The notes under the pieces are model-generated. The model saw only the letters and a program-made list of their open reading frames with translations. It was not told where the DNA came from and ran no database searches. A stretch of 63,829 nucleotides of DNA, the filler included, from Octopus bimaculoides (taxonomy: Eukaryota): the NCBI RefSeq assembly GCF_001194135.2. It is 5 parts of 4 records of this genome, joined end to end, with 100 filler letters (N's around TTAATTAATTAA, not from the genome) between each part and the next. Parts side by side here need not be neighbours in the genome. Positions count along the whole stretch, not along the records: positions 30,227 to 40,408 come from NC_068991.1; 4 more parts are not named here. One strand, 5' to 3'. Positions 30,227 through 39,540 of the stretch are shown in pieces (within the stretch, counting starts at the first letter, position 1; each line of letters begins with the position of its first letter). The position numbers and the translations under genes are program-made.

Positions 30227-30462
30227 GGCACATAAAAGACACCATTTCGAGCGTGGCCGTTTTCGTGCGGGTGACACGTAGAAGCACCCACTACACTCTC
30301 TGAGTGGTTGGCGTTAGGAAGGGCATCCAGCTGTAGAAACTCTGCCAAATTAGACTGGAGCCTGGTGTTGCCATCCGGTTTCACCAGTCCTCAGTCAAAT
30401 CGTGCAACCCATGCTAGCATGGAAAGCGGACGTTAAACGATGATGATGATGATGATGATGAT
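30227..30462 (+). mobile_element. RTE-type 3' end, young copy
   Basis: Near-identical to 1-170; (GAT)n tail; begins at the segment edge. Confidence 0.8.
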
Positions 30463-30996
30463 ATTAGTTTCAAATTTTGACACAAAATCAGCAAGTTCAG
30501 GGGAGAGGATAAGTCGATTATATCGACCCCAGTGCTTCACTGATACTTATTTCATCTGAAAGGATGAAAGGCAAAGTCAACCATGGTGAAATTTGAACTC
30601 TGAACATAAAGACAGATGAAATGCTGCTAAGCATTTTGCCCAGTGTGCTAATGATTCTGGCAGTTCATCGCCTTCTTTGATGAAATATTAACTCCAATAG
30701 AAAAGTCCTTTAGATAAAACCAAACTGCTTTCTGTCTCCTCATTTAACTTTTTCTAATGAATTGTAGTGCACCTGAGTACTGTATACAATAAGCTCATTA
30801 TGATGTTACTTAAAGGTTTAGATGTCAAATACAGCTAAGATAAAAGTAAGAATGGGGTATCTGGAGATAACCAGATAGTAATGATCAAAATGTTATATGA
30901 AATTCAAAATTATAAAAGATGAAATTAATAGCCTGGAAAATTTAAACGATTATCATCTTAAACAATTTGAAATATTTGAATATAATTTTTTTCCAG

Positions 30997-31122
30997 TTCC
31001 TTTATGCTTTTCACATTGAGCCTCTTATAAATATGGACAACATAGAATTAATAAAACAACCTGAAGATGCCACTGAATGTCCTTACCAGTTGTCTCAGTT
31101 ACAGGATAGCAGAGTAAAAGAT
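30997..31122 (+). CDS. CWF19L1: CWF19-like protein 1, internal exon (first visible)
   Basis: ttccag acceptor and gtaagt donor; 126 nt, phase 0-0; [42 protein letters not shown] resembles the vertebrate [30 protein letters not shown] segment as I recall it. Confidence 0.9.
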
Positions 31123-31262
31123 GTAAGTGGTTAATGTTTTACTTTCAGATCTAACTGCTGTTGTTTATTTTGTAATTTTGTTGAGAGAGAGGTGGGAGGG
31201 AGGGAGTGAGTGAGAGAGAGAGTGAGNNNNNNNNNNNNNNNNNNNNNNNNNNNNNNNNNNNN

Positions 31263-31303
<41 letters not shown>

Positions 31304-32151
31304 ACAATTGCTATCATTCAGATATAAAAAACAATTGTTTCAATTTCATGCAAATATCCAAATTACCAAAGAGTTTACCAACTGTGTTAAATGGATAAAA
31401 TAGTTAAATAGTATTTAAGAAAAAAAGTCAAGTTCTGTGAACAATGTAAATGTTTCAAAAAGTTTTTGAGTTATGCTGGTGAGCAGTTAGGCAAAAATAT
31501 ATACAGTAATGTCATAGAAGAAAACAAAGATAAAAGATATTGTATTACCTTACATAAGTTGTTAAGTGATCCTGTAATATTTCAGAGAAGATTTCCCTTT
31601 TAAAACAGAAGAAAGAAAATAAGTTCAGAGAAATGTTTTGTTACCAGTAGGCCATTCTACTTCTGTAGTTTGTAGATCTTTTTAACAGTAGAATATAAGT
31701 ATTGATATAGTGTAACATAGCAGAAGGTTAGCATAAGTTTAATTTCATATAATATCTGGACACTTGTGTAGTTTAACATAATATATAATCATTGATATTA
31801 TAGTACATAGACACAGTTGTAAGTCAACAAGTGTATATTTGCAGTACTGCAACTTATTATTTTACATAGACATTAATATAAATGTCATTTAACTACTTAA
31901 GAATGATTATTTCATTGCTGTAAATAGCACGAGTACAAACAATGTACTTGGTTGGTTAGTTTACAATACTGAGTTTGAATCTTCCTGCATGTTTGAAAAA
32001 CGCAAATCAACTCCATTGCATTGCTATACAAAAATGAAATTTTCAATGGAATTTCAGTGGTCAAGTGGTTTACAGAGGCTACAACACAGTTGGTTAGTCT
32101 AGTTCTATAGCAAGTAGATATCAGTGCTTGATACTGTTTTTTCTTTTCTAG

Positions 32152-32251
32152 GAAGGTCAACAATTCTTTTTTGATATGAAGGCTCCATTAGCAAAAGGAC
32201 AGAAAAGATCTAAGGATGATGAAGACAAACAGAAGAAAAAGCATAAACCAG
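32152..32251 (+). CDS. CWF19L1: CWF19L1 internal exon (basic linker)
   Basis: ttttctag acceptor, gtatat donor; 100 nt; EGQQFFFDMKAPLAKGQKRSKDDEDKQKKKHKP; QFFFD motif; ends in phase 1, matching the next exon. Confidence 0.88.
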
Positions 32252-33600
32252 GTATATATCTTCATCATGATTATCATTCTTTAATACTGTCTTCTGTGCT
32301 GGCATGAATTGGATGGTTTGACAGTATCTGATGAGCCAGAAGATTGCATCAAGCTCCAATGTTTGCTTTGGTATGGAATCTCTGGCTGGATGTCCTTCTT
32401 AATACCAACTACTTCACAGAGTGTACTGATGCTTTCTTGTTGAACTGGCACTAGTGAAGTCACCAAGTAACTTGCATAACAGATCCCTTCAATTGAGTGG
32501 TGTTATAGTGGAGAGAGAGGTGGCTTTATGCCAGATGTTGAGAAATTTAAAGCATGTTTGAGGGACAGAAACAGGTGTCTTGCTATAGAAATTGATTGAT
32601 TGTTTACACTACTATTACGTTTACATATATTTTTTTCTTTTTGCCCTATTCGTAAACTTAGTATAATAGCATATATATATAACTGTGTATAACAATTATC
32701 AAGTTGTCATCATGATAGATTGGCAGAATCATTAGACCATCAGACAAAATGCTTTGCAGTATTTACTTATGACCATTTATGCTCTGAGTTCAAATCTTAC
32801 TGAGGCCAAATTTGCCTTTCATCTTTCCAGAATTCATAAAATAATGTACCAGTCAAGTACCGGAGTTGATTTAATATTTCTATAAAGCATCCAAGCTGTG
32901 AATGGAATTATAAAAAAGTAAAAGAAATTTAAGATACAAGTATTCAACATACCCTTGTCATTATTCAAACTTTGTCACTGTCCTTACCTACATAACTTAC
33001 CTACATGCTGAACCAATGAAGGTCCTGTTTTCAGTCTCCCATCTTGTTAGAAGCTGGGATACCTTAAATCATAGGACTGCTTGATCAAAGTTGACCTGGC
33101 TTAAATGCCAACATAAAATAGTTCAGGACAAAATAATTATTTTACATTGAATTTCTTTGCAAACTCTTAACATTTGACTAGACACTATATTCCTTCTTTT
33201 TGCAATACAACTGTACTGATTATGGATTTGAACTTCTATTCAGATTTAATTTCTTGTCTGTTCTGTTCATACTATGGAACAAGCCAATGAGGGAGCCTTT
33301 ATTTGGTTGCTGAACCTGATAGAAATGACAGTCAAATCTTTCTCATACCTTGCTGTCTTTGAAAAAGAAGAACACATTAGACAGTATGGTCCTAATTACA
33401 TAAAAAGATTGAAGGACCACTGTTAGTATGCCTTTGTTCACTGTCCTGCTGAACAACTAGGCATGGAATTATTGTTGCACCATGCTTCAATACTTTCACT
33501 TGACTCATAGTATGAAAGTAACAGCATTGATGAAGTTTAATCAAACAAACAAACAAACAAACAAACAAACAACACTAATGTTTCTTATTTGTTATTGCAG

Positions 33601-33680
33601 CACAACCGTCTGGCCCTTGTTGGTTCTGTTTACGTGGAGAAAAAGTGGAGAAACATTTGGTTGTTAGTGTTGGAGAGACA
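33601..33680 (+). CDS. CWF19L1: CWF19L1 exon, start of the CwfJ C-terminal domain
   Basis: ttgcag acceptor, gtgagt donor; 80 nt, phase 1-0; [27 protein letters not shown] contains the GPCWFCL..VEKHLVV signature. Confidence 0.95.
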
Positions 33681-33751
33681 GTGAGTGTATTTCTATTCCT
33701 ACTTATAAATATTTGCATTACACCACACATACACAATTGCATGCGCACATG

Positions 33752-33787
<36 letters not shown>

Positions 33788-34610
33788 ATAATAATATTAG
33801 GGATANNNNNNNNNNNNNNNNNNNNNNNNNNNNNNNNNNNNNNNNNNNNNNNNNNNNNNNNNNNNNNNNNNNNNNNNNNNNNNNNNNNNNNNNNNNNNNN
33901 NNNNNNNNNNNNNNNNNNNNNNNNNNNNNNNNNNNNNNNNNNNNNNNNNNNNNNNNATGACAGACTTCTTTCAGTTTCCACATACCAAAATCACTCATAA
34001 AGCTTTGATCAGCCTGGGGCTTTAGTAGAAGAAACTTACCCAAGGTGGCATACAATGGGACTGAACCTGGAATCATGTAGTTCCAAAACAAACTTCTTAA
34101 CCATGCAATTGTGCCCTATAACTAATCAGAATGTACTAATTGTAGAATTCTCAGTGAATTGTTGGACAAAATACTCTCAATATTTGTTTCAACTCTGTGC
34201 TTTATGGTCAAAATCCTGCTGAAGTCAACTTAGCCTTTTATCCTTTTGTGGTCGATAAAAATATGCCAATCCAGGGTAGTGAATTGACAGAATTTGTTAG
34301 AGCGTCAGATGGAACACCTTATAGTATCTGTTCTGGCTCTATACATTCTGAGTTCAAATCCTGCTCAATCCCTGGGAAAAGGCAACATTTCTTTTAGGAG
34401 TTGCAGCTTTGTAGCTAACAGATAAAATCTGCTAGTTTGAAAGTCCAATGGAAAGCTTAGTTTCCTTGGTTCAGTTGGAAGATTCACTATCAGTGCTATC
34501 ACTGCTGCTGCAGCCGTCACTGCCATCAGCAGCAGCAGTAGTAGCAGCACCAGCACCAGCACCGCTGCCACCACCACCACCACCACCACCACCACCACCA
34601 CCACCATTTA

Positions 34611-35711
34611 TGAGGGATGTTCATTAAAAATTTCCCCTGACCCACTTCCCAAGGACTGAAATAAACGAAACTTGGGCATAATTATTAGTCCTTCTCTAAA
34701 TAGCCACCACCAATGGTAATACACTTTTTCCATCACTTTATGCAGCTGTGAAGACTTCATCTATAGAAGTTGGTATGTTGCATCTAGAGCCAAGACTTTA
34801 CCTTGGAAATAAGTTCATCATCTGAAAAGTGCTTCCCCTTCAAAAAAGACTTCATGGTTGGAAAGAGATGGAAGTCAGATGGTGCGAGGTTGGGAGAGTG
34901 AAGGGGATGAGGAAAGATTTCATAGTCACAGAAATGTGTTTTCATCTGGGCAACATGCGCATTGTGAACTGGGGTGTTGTCTTGGAGGAGACGAACTCCT
35001 TTGGTCAGCGTGCCAAGTCTCTGCTTTGATGGTGTACTGCAACTTCTGCAGCAGAGAAGCATAATATGCCCCATTAATTATGGTGCCCTTTGCCAGAAAA
35101 TCCATCATCGCTACTCCATGCTGGTTGGACACGAGCCTTCTTTGAGCCTGGGAGCCATTGACTAGTTCCTGCTTCTGAAAAGGTGTGAGTATCTGGGGAA
35201 TCCATCATGCAGACAACTTCCGCATGTGCAAATGGTCGTGAATGATTTTTCTCCATGGACCCTACACTTATCTTCACTTCTTGGTTTAGTTGCTGAATAG
35301 TTATGTGGTGATCCTCCAAAATGGTGGCTTCCACTTTATGGACGGTGTCATCATCAATGGCAGAATGAAGTTGTCCAGGAATAGGAGCAGTTTCCACTAA
35401 AGTCTGACCACATTTGAACTGGCGATGCCAGTGTTTGGCTATGTTGTAGGTTTGTGCATCGTCTTTCATCTCATTGAAAGTCTCTTTTGTGTATGACCTT
35501 TCAAATAGAACCTGATCACTGATCTGCATACACCTGCTTCCATTATAACACCTTAGTCCACTTTAGCAGCCGTAAAAGACAAACGAATACTAGTGAAAAG
35601 CTGCAATTTACAATGTGACATGTAGAGACATGTATGATTATACCTGTACAAGTTCTATTTCTTGCAATAACCAGAAATGGGTCAGGGAAAATCTTTAATG
35701 AACACCCCTTG
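34611..35711 (-). mobile_element. Mariner (DD34D) element, internally deleted pseudogene, inside a CWF19L1 intron
   Basis: TIRs of about 35 bp (tgagggatgttcattaaaaatttcccctgaccca; right-end reverse complement caaggggtgttcattaaagattttccctgaccca), TA flanks; LQDNTPVH...SPNLAPSDFHLF with 34 residues between the Asp residues; frameshifts. Confidence 0.92.
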
Positions 35712-36524
35712 TATAGTGGTGAGAAATCAAAATGACAGAATGACTAAAAGTATTGAACTTTCAGGTCTTACATTATAATTGTTTCAGTCATTTTATTCTA
35801 TTCCTAGATGGGACATATTTATGCATCTCAGTTCACTTATCTGTAAAGAATAAAAACTAATGATGAAGTGATGATGACTTGTACTATACTGTCTAGACAC
35901 AGCCTCTCTGTCTCTCTTGTTTACTTAATGCTGTCAAATCTGGAGCTAATGTCTTAATGGCATTAATACTCATTCTGTTTATAATTATTTCAGAAGTGCT
36001 GGTGCTATGTAAAATGTATCCAGTCTGCATTGTAAAGTGGTTGGTGTTTTGAAGGGCATCCAGCTGTAAAAAAAAACATGTTAAAACTAACCTCACCTGT
36101 GCTGGTGCCATGTATAAAGCACTCAGTCCACTCTGTGGAGTGGTTGGTGTTAGGAAGGGCATCCAGCCATAAAAACCATGCCAAAACAGACAGCAAAGCA
36201 TGGTGCAGTCTTCTGCCTAGCCAGCTCCTGTCAAACTGTCCAACCCATGCCAGCATGGAAAATGGACGTTAAATGATGATGATGATGGTCATTACATGTT
36301 TGAATTTCTAAGCTGTGTTATTATGATAATAAATTGAATTTCATAAAACTCATTCACATTATTTCAGAAGTTGATCAGGCTGCTTATGTCCTTGAGGAAT
36401 TAGAGTATGTTATAGCATTGTGAATCGGTACCAATGATGCAAAAAACTTGCTTTCTAAATATTTGAGGTTTTAAGTCTTTCTCGCAGAAGTTAGTCAGGG
36501 AGATTTATAATAGCAGATTTATGG

Positions 36525-36957
36525 AGGATCAACAGCTTCTATAGAAGAACCCTGAGAACCATTGAGAACATCAGATGAAACCATCATGTTTTCAACAAAA
36601 AACTGTGAGCAATGACGCATCAGTTCACAGCCTTTCACCTCATAGCTATCTGTTGCATGTGCTGGTACAGACATATCCTTTATCTCCTGCCGGATCATCC
36701 TACCAGGGTTTTACTCTCATTTGATGCAAGAGCTGTGGACTGGAAGAGGCCTGGTGGCAGGCCCATCATCAGATGGCTGGATATGTGATTGGGGAAGATT
36801 TCCAGAGGCTCAATGTCACTTTGGAGGATGCAAAGGAGCTGGCATAGGACTGCCAGCGATGGAGAGTGCCAGTGGATCTGGTCACTTCGACACATGATGA
36901 CATATCTGGAACCGCTAGCATGGGATGATCCCAGCCTCATCAAGTGAAGATTTATGG
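36525..36957 (+). mobile_element. RTE-clade LINE ORF2 C-terminal relic
   Basis: One frame with stops: RINSFYRRTLRTIENIR*NHHVFN...CWYRHIL...WKRPGGRPIIRWLD. Confidence 0.75.
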
Positions 36958-37034
36958 AGAGTTTACAATTGTTTATGATTTACAGAGTTTTCTAGGACAT
37001 ATAGTGGCCTGTAAATAGTACCATTTGAGCATAA

Positions 37035-37375
37035 TCGTTACCAGAGTCACCTGCTAGCACTTGTGGTGGTGGCATGTTAGAAAATCATTTGAGCGAGGCC
37101 ATTGGCAGTGCCGCTGGACTGGCTCCTGTGCAAGTGGCACATAAAAAACACCATTTTGAGCGTGGCCGTTGCCAGTACTGTGTAACTGGCCTTCGTGCCA
37201 GTGGCACATAAAAGCACCCACTACACTCTCGGAGTGGTTGGCGTTAGGAAGGGTATCCAGCTGTAGAAACTCTGCCAGATCAGCTTGGAGCCTGGTGCAG
37301 CCTTCTGGCTTGCCAGTCCTCAGTCAACTCGTCCAACCCATGCTAGCATGGAAAGCAGAAGTTAAACGATGATAG
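37035..37375 (+). mobile_element. RTE-type 3' UTR with about three tandem 60-65 bp units
   Basis: Repeated tggcacataaaa(a)cacc units, then the aggaaggg motif and ccatgctagcatgg. Confidence 0.75.
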
Positions 37376-37792
37376 CTCAATCTAATTTCAAAAGCATGCT
37401 GACCTCATCTGTTGTGTTTTTATGTTTTACTCTGTTTTAATCATGTCTAATTGTGATTGTCCTTGGTCCCCTTTTATCCCCCCACCCACACACATGCATA
37501 CACGTGTACATTAGTGCATACATATAAACAGCTCACACAGACATGCACACTCAGATATATTTATTTTCTCTATAGACTGGTTCCGAGCTCAGAATCTTAA
37601 ATCAATGTGTCAGTGTTCCTTCCCACTTTACCACTGTGCTGGTGTATTTTCTATTTTGACTTGCATTTAATTTACAATTTAGCTATGTCTGTATTTCATT
37701 TTTTTGAATCAAAATTTTGAAATATTTTCTATGTCAATATCATTTTATTGACTTTGCTGTATTTTATGATCTAACAAATGTTGTTTTTCCAG

Positions 37793-37908
37793 ACATACAT
37801 GGCTTTAGCAAAAGGAGCCATGGTTCCAGATCATGTTCTTATCCTCCCAATTGGTCATTACCAGTCTACTGTGGTGGCTCCAAGTGAAGTTGTGGAAGAA
37901 ATTGAGAA
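37793..37908 (+). CDS. CWF19L1: CWF19L1 exon ending at a U12-type donor
   Basis: ttccag acceptor; [38 protein letters not shown] plus aa; the [12 protein letters not shown] signature; followed by ATATCCTTT. Confidence 0.95.
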
Positions 37909-38298
37909 ATATCCTTTTACCTTTTTATTTACTCACAGCAAGCATCATATTTTCCGGTATACAAGTCAATGTATATAGCGTAAACATGTATAAACATTCA
38001 AACATTGACACTATCTTTCCAAATCCTGCTGCACTTTTCATGGAATTTTTAGTGCTCCAAAGTTGTCTTGGTATATAAGTTCATCTACCTTTTTTAACTG
38101 TAAATTTTGGTCTGAAAGATTCGTCTTGTATGCTTGAAAGTATAGTGTCAGGCATTGACTATGTTTATAAATAGCTTATACAAATTACACAACACGTTTA
38201 AAAGATAATTCAATCTGTTTTTACCTCAATACACACTCTCTCTCTCTTTCACACACACACAATATATTTATATCTATTTAGCCTTAACAATGCGCCAA
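37909..38298 (+). other. U12-type (minor spliceosome) intron with AT-AA termini
   Basis: 5' end ATATCCTTTT; branch-like CCTTAAC at 38282-38288, 11 nt from the branch A to the 3' end; ends ...gcgccAA; only this junction restores EK-YK in frame. Confidence 0.85.
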
Positions 38299-38392
38299 AT
38301 ATAAGTCCAATTTAAGAAAATATTTCAAGTGTTTGGGGAAAGTTGTAGTTTTCTTTGAACGAAATTACAAGACATCACATCTTCAGATACAG
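38299..38392 (+). CDS. CWF19L1: CWF19L1 exon after the U12 intron
   Basis: 94 nt, phase 2-0; [31 protein letters not shown] (FERNYK..HLQ motif); gtaaga donor. Confidence 0.93.
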
Positions 38393-39013
38393 GTAAGAAA
38401 AGTTTATATCTCTATACCTCTGTTTGTCTGTTGTTTCTCTCCCTTCCTCTCTCTCTCTCTCTCTCTCTCTCTGACTGGGTGCAGGCATGGCTGTGTGGTT
38501 GAGAAGTTTGTTTTTCAACCACATGGTTTTGGGTTTGGTCTCAGATGCATGGGTTAGTGGTTAGGGTGATCATAAGATCACGAGTTCAAAAACAGGCGAC
38601 ATGTTGTGTCTTTGAGCGAGTCATTTTATTTCACATTGTTCCAGTCCACTCATCTGGCCAAAATGAGTAGTATTGTAAGTCAAAGGGCCAGCCTTGTCAC
38701 ATTCTGAGTCACACTGAATCACCCTGGGAACTGTGTTAAAGGTGTATGTGTCTGAAGAGTGCTCAGCCACATGCACATTAATTTCATGAGCAGGCTGGTC
38801 TGTTGATTGGATCAACTGGAACCTCCAGTTGCTTAAATAATAATAAATTGATGATCTACTTTTGTTTAGCCTATTGTTTGGCCTATTGTTTAGTCTGTTC
38901 TTTAGTATATTGTTTTGCTGATTTTTAGCCTATTGTTTCTAAGGTAAGAATATTACTTGTGCTATGTTGCTATGTCTATTTGTCTTCAATGTTTCTACAT
39001 GTTCTTTCCCTAG

Positions 39014-39127
39014 GCCATTCCCGTCCCTGCAAATCTTGCATGTAATATTACCGACACATTTACAGAGTTTGCAGTTGAGGAGTCCATTGATCTGAATGAA
39101 ATACCAAAGCATTCTGATTTAAAGCAG
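39014..39127 (+). CDS. CWF19L1: CWF19L1 exon (last visible; C-terminal exons absent)
   Basis: ccctag acceptor, gtaaga donor; 114 nt; AIPVPANLACNITDTFTEFAVEESIDLNEIPKHSDLKQ. Confidence 0.92.
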
Positions 39128-39289
39128 GTAAGAATGGAAATATCTAATAAAGTGGTTCAGAGAAAGCCATTGGTGAATTGATAGGCTGTTGCTATACAAA
39201 CAGGAGGGATGGTGGCTTGTATCTTAAAGATACTTAACATTCAATAATCCACTTGTTTATGTAGGATACAGTAAAAGTAAAAAGGTAAA

Positions 39290-39540
39290 GTCACCTTCTT
39301 GAGTCACACTGGCTCATAAGGGCCAGTTTCCCGGTTTCATGGTGTATATATTCCCCATCTGGATGGGATGCCAGTCCATCGCTGGATTACTCATTTTTGC
39401 CAGCTGAGTGGACTGGAGCAATGTGAAATGAAGGTGTTTTGCTCAAGAATACAACGCGTCGCTCGGTCCAGGAATTGAAACCACAATCTTATTGTCATGA
39501 ATCCAACACCCTAACCACTAAACCACGTGCCTCCACTGGA
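39290..39540 (-). mobile_element. CORE-like tRNA SINE
   Basis: gagtggactggagcaatgtgaaatgaag...caagaatacaacgcg...ccctaaccactaaaccacgtgcctcc. Confidence 0.75.

Follow-up and report, generated by a model that had tools for sequence, protein, structure and literature searches.

The intron at positions 37909-38298 of the window (63,829 nucleotides of Octopus bimaculoides DNA in five joined parts) is very probably an A-type (AT-AN) U12-dependent intron of the CWF19L1 gene, as judged from its splice signals and its orthologues. It is 390 nt long, lies on the plus strand in phase 2, ends in the non-canonical pair AT-AA and separates two exons of a gene with a CwfJ_C_1 domain. The observations behind this assignment are the sequence signals, the junction at the protein level, the conservation of the terminal AA across genomes and the orthology of the intron.

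Host gene and exon structure

The piece of the window that comes from NC_068991.1 (positions 30227 to 40408) carries five exons of one gene on the plus strand. Exon Z (32153-32251; EGQQFFFDMKAPLAKGQKRSKDDEDKQKKKHKP) is bounded by an acceptor ..ttctAG and a donor GTATAT, and exon A (33601-33679) has ordinary GT-AG borders, with the donor GTGAGT at 33680. Exon B (37793-37908) follows an acceptor ttttccAG and includes the first two bases of a Lys codon, the third base of which begins exon C (38299-38392; donor GTAAGA). Exon D (39014-39127; AIPVPANLACNITDTFTEFAVEESIDLNEIPKHSDLKQ) again has ordinary borders, ..ctAG and GTAAGA. Of the five intron boundaries seen, four follow the ordinary GT..AG rule (donors GTATAT, GTGAGT, GTAAGA and GTAAGA, with acceptors in ..AG).

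The joined peptide of exons B and C matches the Pfam family CwfJ_C_1 (PF04677) with E=2e-29, and all five window exons are 100% identical to RefSeq XP_052827700.1 (P0228), which is given in its cluster listing as 'CWF19-like protein 1 isoform X1 [Octopus bimaculoides]'. When the 168-aa window peptide, padded with X to 434 aa, was used as a protein search query, the best matches came from Octopus bimaculoides (90% identity), Argonauta hians and O. sinensis; the O. bimaculoides match reaches only 90% because of a 16-residue deletion in that model. The host gene is Octopus bimaculoides CWF19L1. The architecture of CWF19L1 comprises a metallophosphatase-like N-terminus, CwfJ_C_1 and CwfJ_C_2; of these, only CwfJ_C_1 falls within the piece. 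Its yeast orthologue, Drn1, binds Dbr1 and stimulates the debranching of lariats, and CWF19L1/Drn1 copurifies with spliceosomes (PMC4105757). The description in the earlier note, a splicing-related gene named there as CWF19L1, is a fair one.

Downstream of the intron, the O. sinensis RefSeq isoform X2 (P0113) skips exon D (..HLQIQ/IVNVEAPYF.., where the slash, here and below, marks the junction), which suggests that skipping of the exon that follows exon C is annotated as an isoform.

Splice signals of the intron

Read directly from the sequence, the donor at 37909-37918 is ATATCCTTTT, and its first nine bases (ATATCCTTT, 37909-37917, plus strand) match the U12-type 5' splice site RTATCCTTT at 9/9 positions. 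The same donor, ATATCCTTT, is also present in Argonauta, in the chiton and in the Daphnia-like contigs. Towards the other end of the intron, CCTTAAC at 38282-38288 (plus strand) is a 7/7 match to the U12-type branch site. Its second A, at 38287, is the presumed branch nucleotide and lies 11 nt from the last intron base, 38298, a distance within the range of about 10-15 nt taken here to mark the U12 class and at the published optimum of 11-13 nt between branch point and 3' end (PMC3584512). Bases 38292-38298 read gcgccAA and are followed by atataag, so that the donor, the branch site and the acceptor had all been described accurately to the base in the earlier note. There is no pyrimidine tract in the last 24 nt (TATTTAGCCTTAACAATGCGCCAA), where the pyrimidine fraction is 0.59 without a run; such a tract is missing from U12 introns in general (PMC3584512).

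The terminal pair is neither AT-AC nor GT-AG, the canonical combinations, as the intron closes on AA at 38297-38298 (plus strand). These ends do not disqualify it from the U12 class, whose defining features are the 5' splice site and the branch site and in which AT-AA is an accepted subtype; the class is assigned here by consensus matching and orthology. The earlier note had called AT-AA a known but rare class, in agreement with published surveys (PMC1557818 Table 2), and it is the commonest non-canonical minor type, with 823 conserved animal minor introns or 1.117% (PMC10639083 Table S1). Minor introns have also been reported in Octopus sinensis and in molluscs (PMC10639083). The earlier reading of a U12-type intron with AT-AA ends stands: donor and branch site both match perfectly, a pyrimidine tract is lacking, and in many lineages the orthologous intron, identical in codon and phase, is of U12 type.

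Given the base composition of the piece, RTATCCTTT is expected at one fixed position with P ~1.6e-5 and CCTTAAC within 11 allowed offsets with P ~6e-4, for a joint value of ~1e-8; chance is negligible as an explanation for the coincidence of the two motifs. Elsewhere in the piece ATATCCTTT occurs only once, at 36673-36681, in the long intron that separates exon A from exon B. No coding homology or exon was found beside this copy, and it is taken as a chance occurrence. An Rfam scan of the piece gave no match.

Conservation of the AA end in molluscs

The 3' terminal AA is shared by O. sinensis, Argonauta, Biomphalaria and Liolophura. On the O. sinensis chromosome (L057), both the donor (GAGAA/ATATCCTTTTACC) and the 3' end (TTTAGCCTTAACAATGCGCCAA/ATATAAG) are identical to those of O. 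bimaculoides, and the last ~65 nt of the intron are the same, AA included; the introns of the locus are otherwise 89-94% identical overall between the two species. Argonauta hians reads GACAA/ATATCCTTTTAC ... TTTCCCTTAACAATTCTTCAA/ATATAAATC, the chiton Liolophura sinensis ATATCCTTTT ... GACCTTAACTTATGGAAA/ and Biomphalaria glabrata ATATCTTTGA ... GACTTAACTCTAGTTCAA/, each of them with AT-AA termini. AT-AA ends at the same codon and in the same phase are thus found in five genomes from three molluscan classes.

In Lottia gigantea (KB199650.1; L054 3335-3723) and Ostrea edulis (OX387709.1; L059 15538-18880), the orthologous intron is GT-TG, and both its U12 donor (GTATCCTTT) and its branch site, 11 nt before the intron end, are perfect matches. 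Such ends are very rare, making up 0.039% of conserved animal minor introns (PMC10639083 Table S1). Among the groups that the earlier note had proposed for comparison, AT-AA holds in the octopods and in further molluscs, Lottia and Ostrea carry GT-TG, and vertebrates have no intron at this site.

The molluscs read comprise three octopods, a chiton, two gastropods and an oyster, and not one of these seven genomes has a canonical 3' end: five carry AT-AA and two GT-TG. The distance from branch to 3' end is 10-11 nt in 7/7 of them, near the 11-13 nt published as optimal. Furthermore, 18 of the 20 introns tabulated are U12-type, and these invariably begin and end with A..A, A..C or G..G. On balance, we lean towards the view that in molluscs this 3' site is chosen by the minor spliceosome according to its distance and the match of first and last base, leaving the penultimate base free. 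If true, this leads one to ask why two molluscs so far apart both have GT-TG, and if RNA data confirm the junctions, the site would amount to a natural long-term experiment across several molluscan classes. This mollusc pattern of end bases, lacking a canonical 3' end, is the most interesting by-product of the analysis and is worth a look with RNA data.

The Argonauta hians intron also contains a 71-nt inverted repeat (L056 5100-5170 and 5184-5254) that is 92% complementary, with a 13-nt loop. Absent from Octopus, it looks like a small hairpin-forming insertion.

History of the intron across animals

The wider comparison covered about 60 orthologous loci, drawn from one metagenome-contig scan and from look-ups in named genomes, and an intron was placed at the same site when it shared both codon and phase (phase 2, Lys/Gln codon). 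U12-type orthologues at this codon and phase were found in Argonauta, O. sinensis, Liolophura, Biomphalaria, Lottia, Ostrea, Owenia, L025 and the Daphnia-like contigs. The three Daphnia-like contigs (L001, L002 and L052) have U12-type introns with AT-AC ends. U12-type GT-AG introns with GTATCCTT occur in Owenia fusiformis, L025, L041 and L049, the protein of L025 being 100% identical to that of Paralvinella palmiformis. About 25 annelid-like contigs carry U12-type GT-AG introns with GTATCTTT and either CCTTAAC or GCTTAAC, and in these the branch A lies 14 nt from the end.

Two further contigs hold U2-like introns at the same codon and phase (L046 372-1564 and L007 6105-6470), with donors GTGCGT and GTATGC and pyrimidine-rich 3' ends. 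L046 retains ATTCTTAAC 22 nt upstream of its 3' end and, from its sequence, looks like a U12-to-U2 conversion caught midway. The site is without an intron in the vertebrate fragments, in L008-L020, in the starfish Patiria and in several further fragments and contigs.

Given its presence in molluscs, annelids and cladoceran crustaceans, the intron is old, dating at least to the common ancestor of these groups. Its terminal bases have drifted among AT-AC, AT-AA, GT-AG and GT-TG, with conversion to U2 type or loss elsewhere. Repeated switching of end bases is known for minor introns (PMC1557818).

Introns are also present somewhat upstream of the site. Patiria miniata (L060) and L022 have no Lys/Tyr intron and instead carry a U2 GT-AG intron nine codons upstream, in phase 0. 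L021, L023 and L024 were considered as 'GC-AA' introns at the site and rejected, since their introns are ordinary GT-AG ones located four codons upstream, in phase 0. The upstream introns, at four or nine codons, are either separate introns or slid ones.

Exact junction and splicing output

An enumeration covered every frame-preserving combination of donor and acceptor. The hexamer AAATAT stands at both junctions, so that seven registers yield an identical mRNA, and among these only AT-AA sets the U12 donor in register. The AT-AA product reads GAG AA/A TAT (..EEIEK/YKSNLRKYF..) in frame, aligns without a gap across the junction with 10 orthologues (alignment A1) and has an invariant Lys (K64 of that alignment) directly after the junction. 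Among the 29 named proteins listed, 22 share a gapless junction of the form E-x-[EDIV]-[KQRS]/[YF]-[KQ]. XP_052827700.1 encodes exactly the AT-AA junction and XP_029643280.2 of O. sinensis has an identical junction sequence, the acceptor assignment in the octopuses resting on RefSeq models that were possibly guided by protein alignment rather than by transcripts. The EK/YK junction also appears in the cephalopod-like transcript assemblies P0112 and P0114, which were read at the protein level. Taken together, the sequences most probably place the main junction at 37908/38299.

The earlier note had gone on to suggest that weak splicing of this intron could limit CWF19L1 and tie minor splicing to lariat turnover. 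On this account, AT-AA ends would slow or blur splicing, and retention or nonsense-mediated decay would tune the dosage of CWF19L1, coupling the minor spliceosome to lariat turnover. In human cells, A-type (AT-AN) minor introns do have a relatively high basal level of retention, and they require CENATAC (PMC8280824), and splicing efficiency is often reduced at non-canonical ends (PMC3584512). Retention of 37909-38298 would lead to a stop after 23 codons, and with the donor at 37909 the neighbouring acceptors 38297, 38299 and 38300 all break the frame; of these, 38299 had been noted before as shifting the frame and 38300 as giving an immediate TAA (GAG AAA TAA), both correctly. However, a premature stop upon retention is true of nearly any intron, and the persistence of AT-AA in a chiton, a gastropod and cephalopods speaks for adequate function, as a stably working configuration in three molluscan classes. 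In addition, the intron is missing in vertebrates, several intron-less contigs and a starfish, and is U2-like in L007 and L046, so that CWF19L1 does not need a minor intron and a conserved regulatory link is improbable. Neutral drift of the termini is the published default (PMC10639083). The suggested link to CWF19L1 dosage is thus unsupported, and we regard it as unlikely.

There is even less room for a main acceptor at a nearby AG. In such a scheme the U12 donor would be joined chiefly to the AG at 38316, in frame, or to that at 38305, with a frameshift and stop, and the AT-AA product would be minor or non-productive. The statement in the earlier note that no AC or AG restores the frame has to be corrected in this respect, as an AG inside exon C (38315-38316, plus strand) is in frame with the same donor, and mixed AT-AG ends occur naturally, with 20 cases recorded (PMC1557818 Table 2). 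Nevertheless, this AG lies 29 nt from the branch A and the frame-breaking AG 38305 lies 18 nt from it, against the optimum of 11-13 nt, and AT-AG combinations have been described as disfavoured (PMC3584512). Splicing to 38315-38316 would give EEIEK-KYFKC and lose YKSNLR, six conserved codons that include the invariant K64; YKSNLR fits the pattern Y-K-x-x-L-[RK] found in all orthologues, with its K invariant, and the RefSeq models retain it. The AG at 38315-38316 is probably not the main acceptor, and the scheme as a whole is very unlikely, though either 38316 (in frame) or 38305 (frame-shifting) could take part of the flux.

Gene models at the intron

It is precisely at this intron that five public gene models go wrong (P0110, P0229, P0111, P0070 and Biomphalaria L055). 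The UniRef model of O. bimaculoides (P0110) forces an intron from GT 37892 to AG 38329 and thereby deletes 16 residues. The O. vulgaris model CAI9730161.1 reads EKYPFT and then skips exon C, while the Argonauta hians model reads EKYPFT/KYFK. In Biomphalaria (CM074211.1, L055), the gene is split in two at the intron (1-7252 and 8001-10935), and the Daphnia galeata model reads through into the intron (..DKYPFLDYNLLW..), inserting spurious residues. The cost in three of the five models is 6 to 31 conserved CwfJ_C_1 residues. The intron, in other words, breaks automatic gene models.

Taken at face value, the older O. bimaculoides model P0110 (..APSEV/CLGK..), together with the GT-AG solutions also forced in the Argonauta and O. 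vulgaris models, would make the real intron a U2-type GT-AG one, such as GT 37892 to AG 38329, and the U12-like motifs coincidental. This is highly improbable, for the 16 residues that such an intron removes are conserved and gapless in >25 species, including P0112 and P0114. Moreover, GT 37892 (GTTGTGGAAG) is a poor donor, no pyrimidine tract precedes 38329, newer RefSeq models reject the pair, and the U12 motifs, with a coincidence probability of ~1e-8, recur in the orthologues. Finally, a sequencing or assembly error hiding an ordinary AT-AC intron, which the earlier note had named as a possibility, can be dismissed with near certainty. In its favour, AT-AC is about 20 times commoner than AT-AA among animal minor introns, the site lies inside a run of three A and the Daphnia-like orthologues are AT-AC. 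Against it, the independently assembled O. sinensis genome has the identical ..GCGCCAA/ATATAAG, and the intron likewise closes on AA in Argonauta hians, Liolophura sinensis and Biomphalaria glabrata, so that four other genomes already refute it.

Proposed mechanism

For the preferred reading, an AT-AA intron of the U12 class, the steps of splicing can be proposed from the established mechanism of that class. The intron would presumably be removed by the minor spliceosome, in dependence on U11, U12, U4atac and U6atac. The U11/U12 di-snRNP would recognise ATATCCTTT and CCTTAAC jointly, with U11 pairing first with the 5' end ATATCCTTT and U6atac then replacing U11. U12 would pair with CCTTAAC and bulge the A at 38287, which would then attack the 5' splice site. 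Cleavage at the 3' side, presumably exactly at 38298 in vivo, would be set mainly by the 11-nt distance from the branch rather than by the identity of the last two bases, and AA could serve as an acceptor for that reason. Non-canonical 3' ends have been found experimentally to support U12 splicing, often at reduced efficiency (PMC3584512).

Relation to known minor introns

The closest known counterparts are the AT-AA introns of human and mouse RASGRP4 and of human MSH3 in SpliceRack (PMC1557818 Table 3), which likewise have the donor ATATCCTT. They share with the octopus intron a TCCTTAAC-like branch site near the 3' end, the lack of a pyrimidine tract and a terminal A in place of C, and in some cases their ends are conserved between species, as are those of the CWF19L1 intron. 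The host gene differs, however, and vertebrate CWF19L1 has no intron at this codon, and AT-AA is here retained across three molluscan classes, far beyond the range covered by comparing human with mouse. In comparison to canonical AT-AC U12 introns, the donor and branch consensus and the short branch distance are the same, and the Daphnia-like orthologues are themselves AT-AC, but the last base in octopus is A and not C. The changes seen at this site (AT-AC, AT-AA, GT-AG, GT-TG, U2-like and absent) are of the same kind as the U12 subtype switching and U12-to-U2 conversion described in human and mouse; unlike in those cases, seven mollusc genomes all lack a canonical 3' end.

Literature searches for CWF19L1 together with minor or U12-type introns returned nothing relevant. 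With the AT-AA junction already present in RefSeq and the AT-AA class documented, the intron is a genuine but fairly ordinary example and reveals no new mechanism. It adds an invertebrate CWF19L1 intron to the minor-intron catalogue and documents, with good sampling, how the terminal dinucleotides of a single orthologous intron have switched.

Other features of the locus

Within the long intron between exons A and B, a segment of ~1.8 kb at 34564-36371 is absent from the orthologous intron of O. sinensis. It contains minus-strand ORFs at 35074-35529 and 34784-35074 and probably represents a mobile element inserted in this lineage; four ORFs from repeats or insertions gave no match in Pfam. The piece holds 187 N in total, with runs that represent assembly gaps at ~31230-31270 and ~33790-33960, both intronic and beside (GA)n/(CT)n and (TA)n microsatellites. 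An interspersed repeat is present in two intronic copies, at 30267-30464 and 37117-37373, and for each copy the O. sinensis locus contains two further matching stretches, with 84-87% identity.
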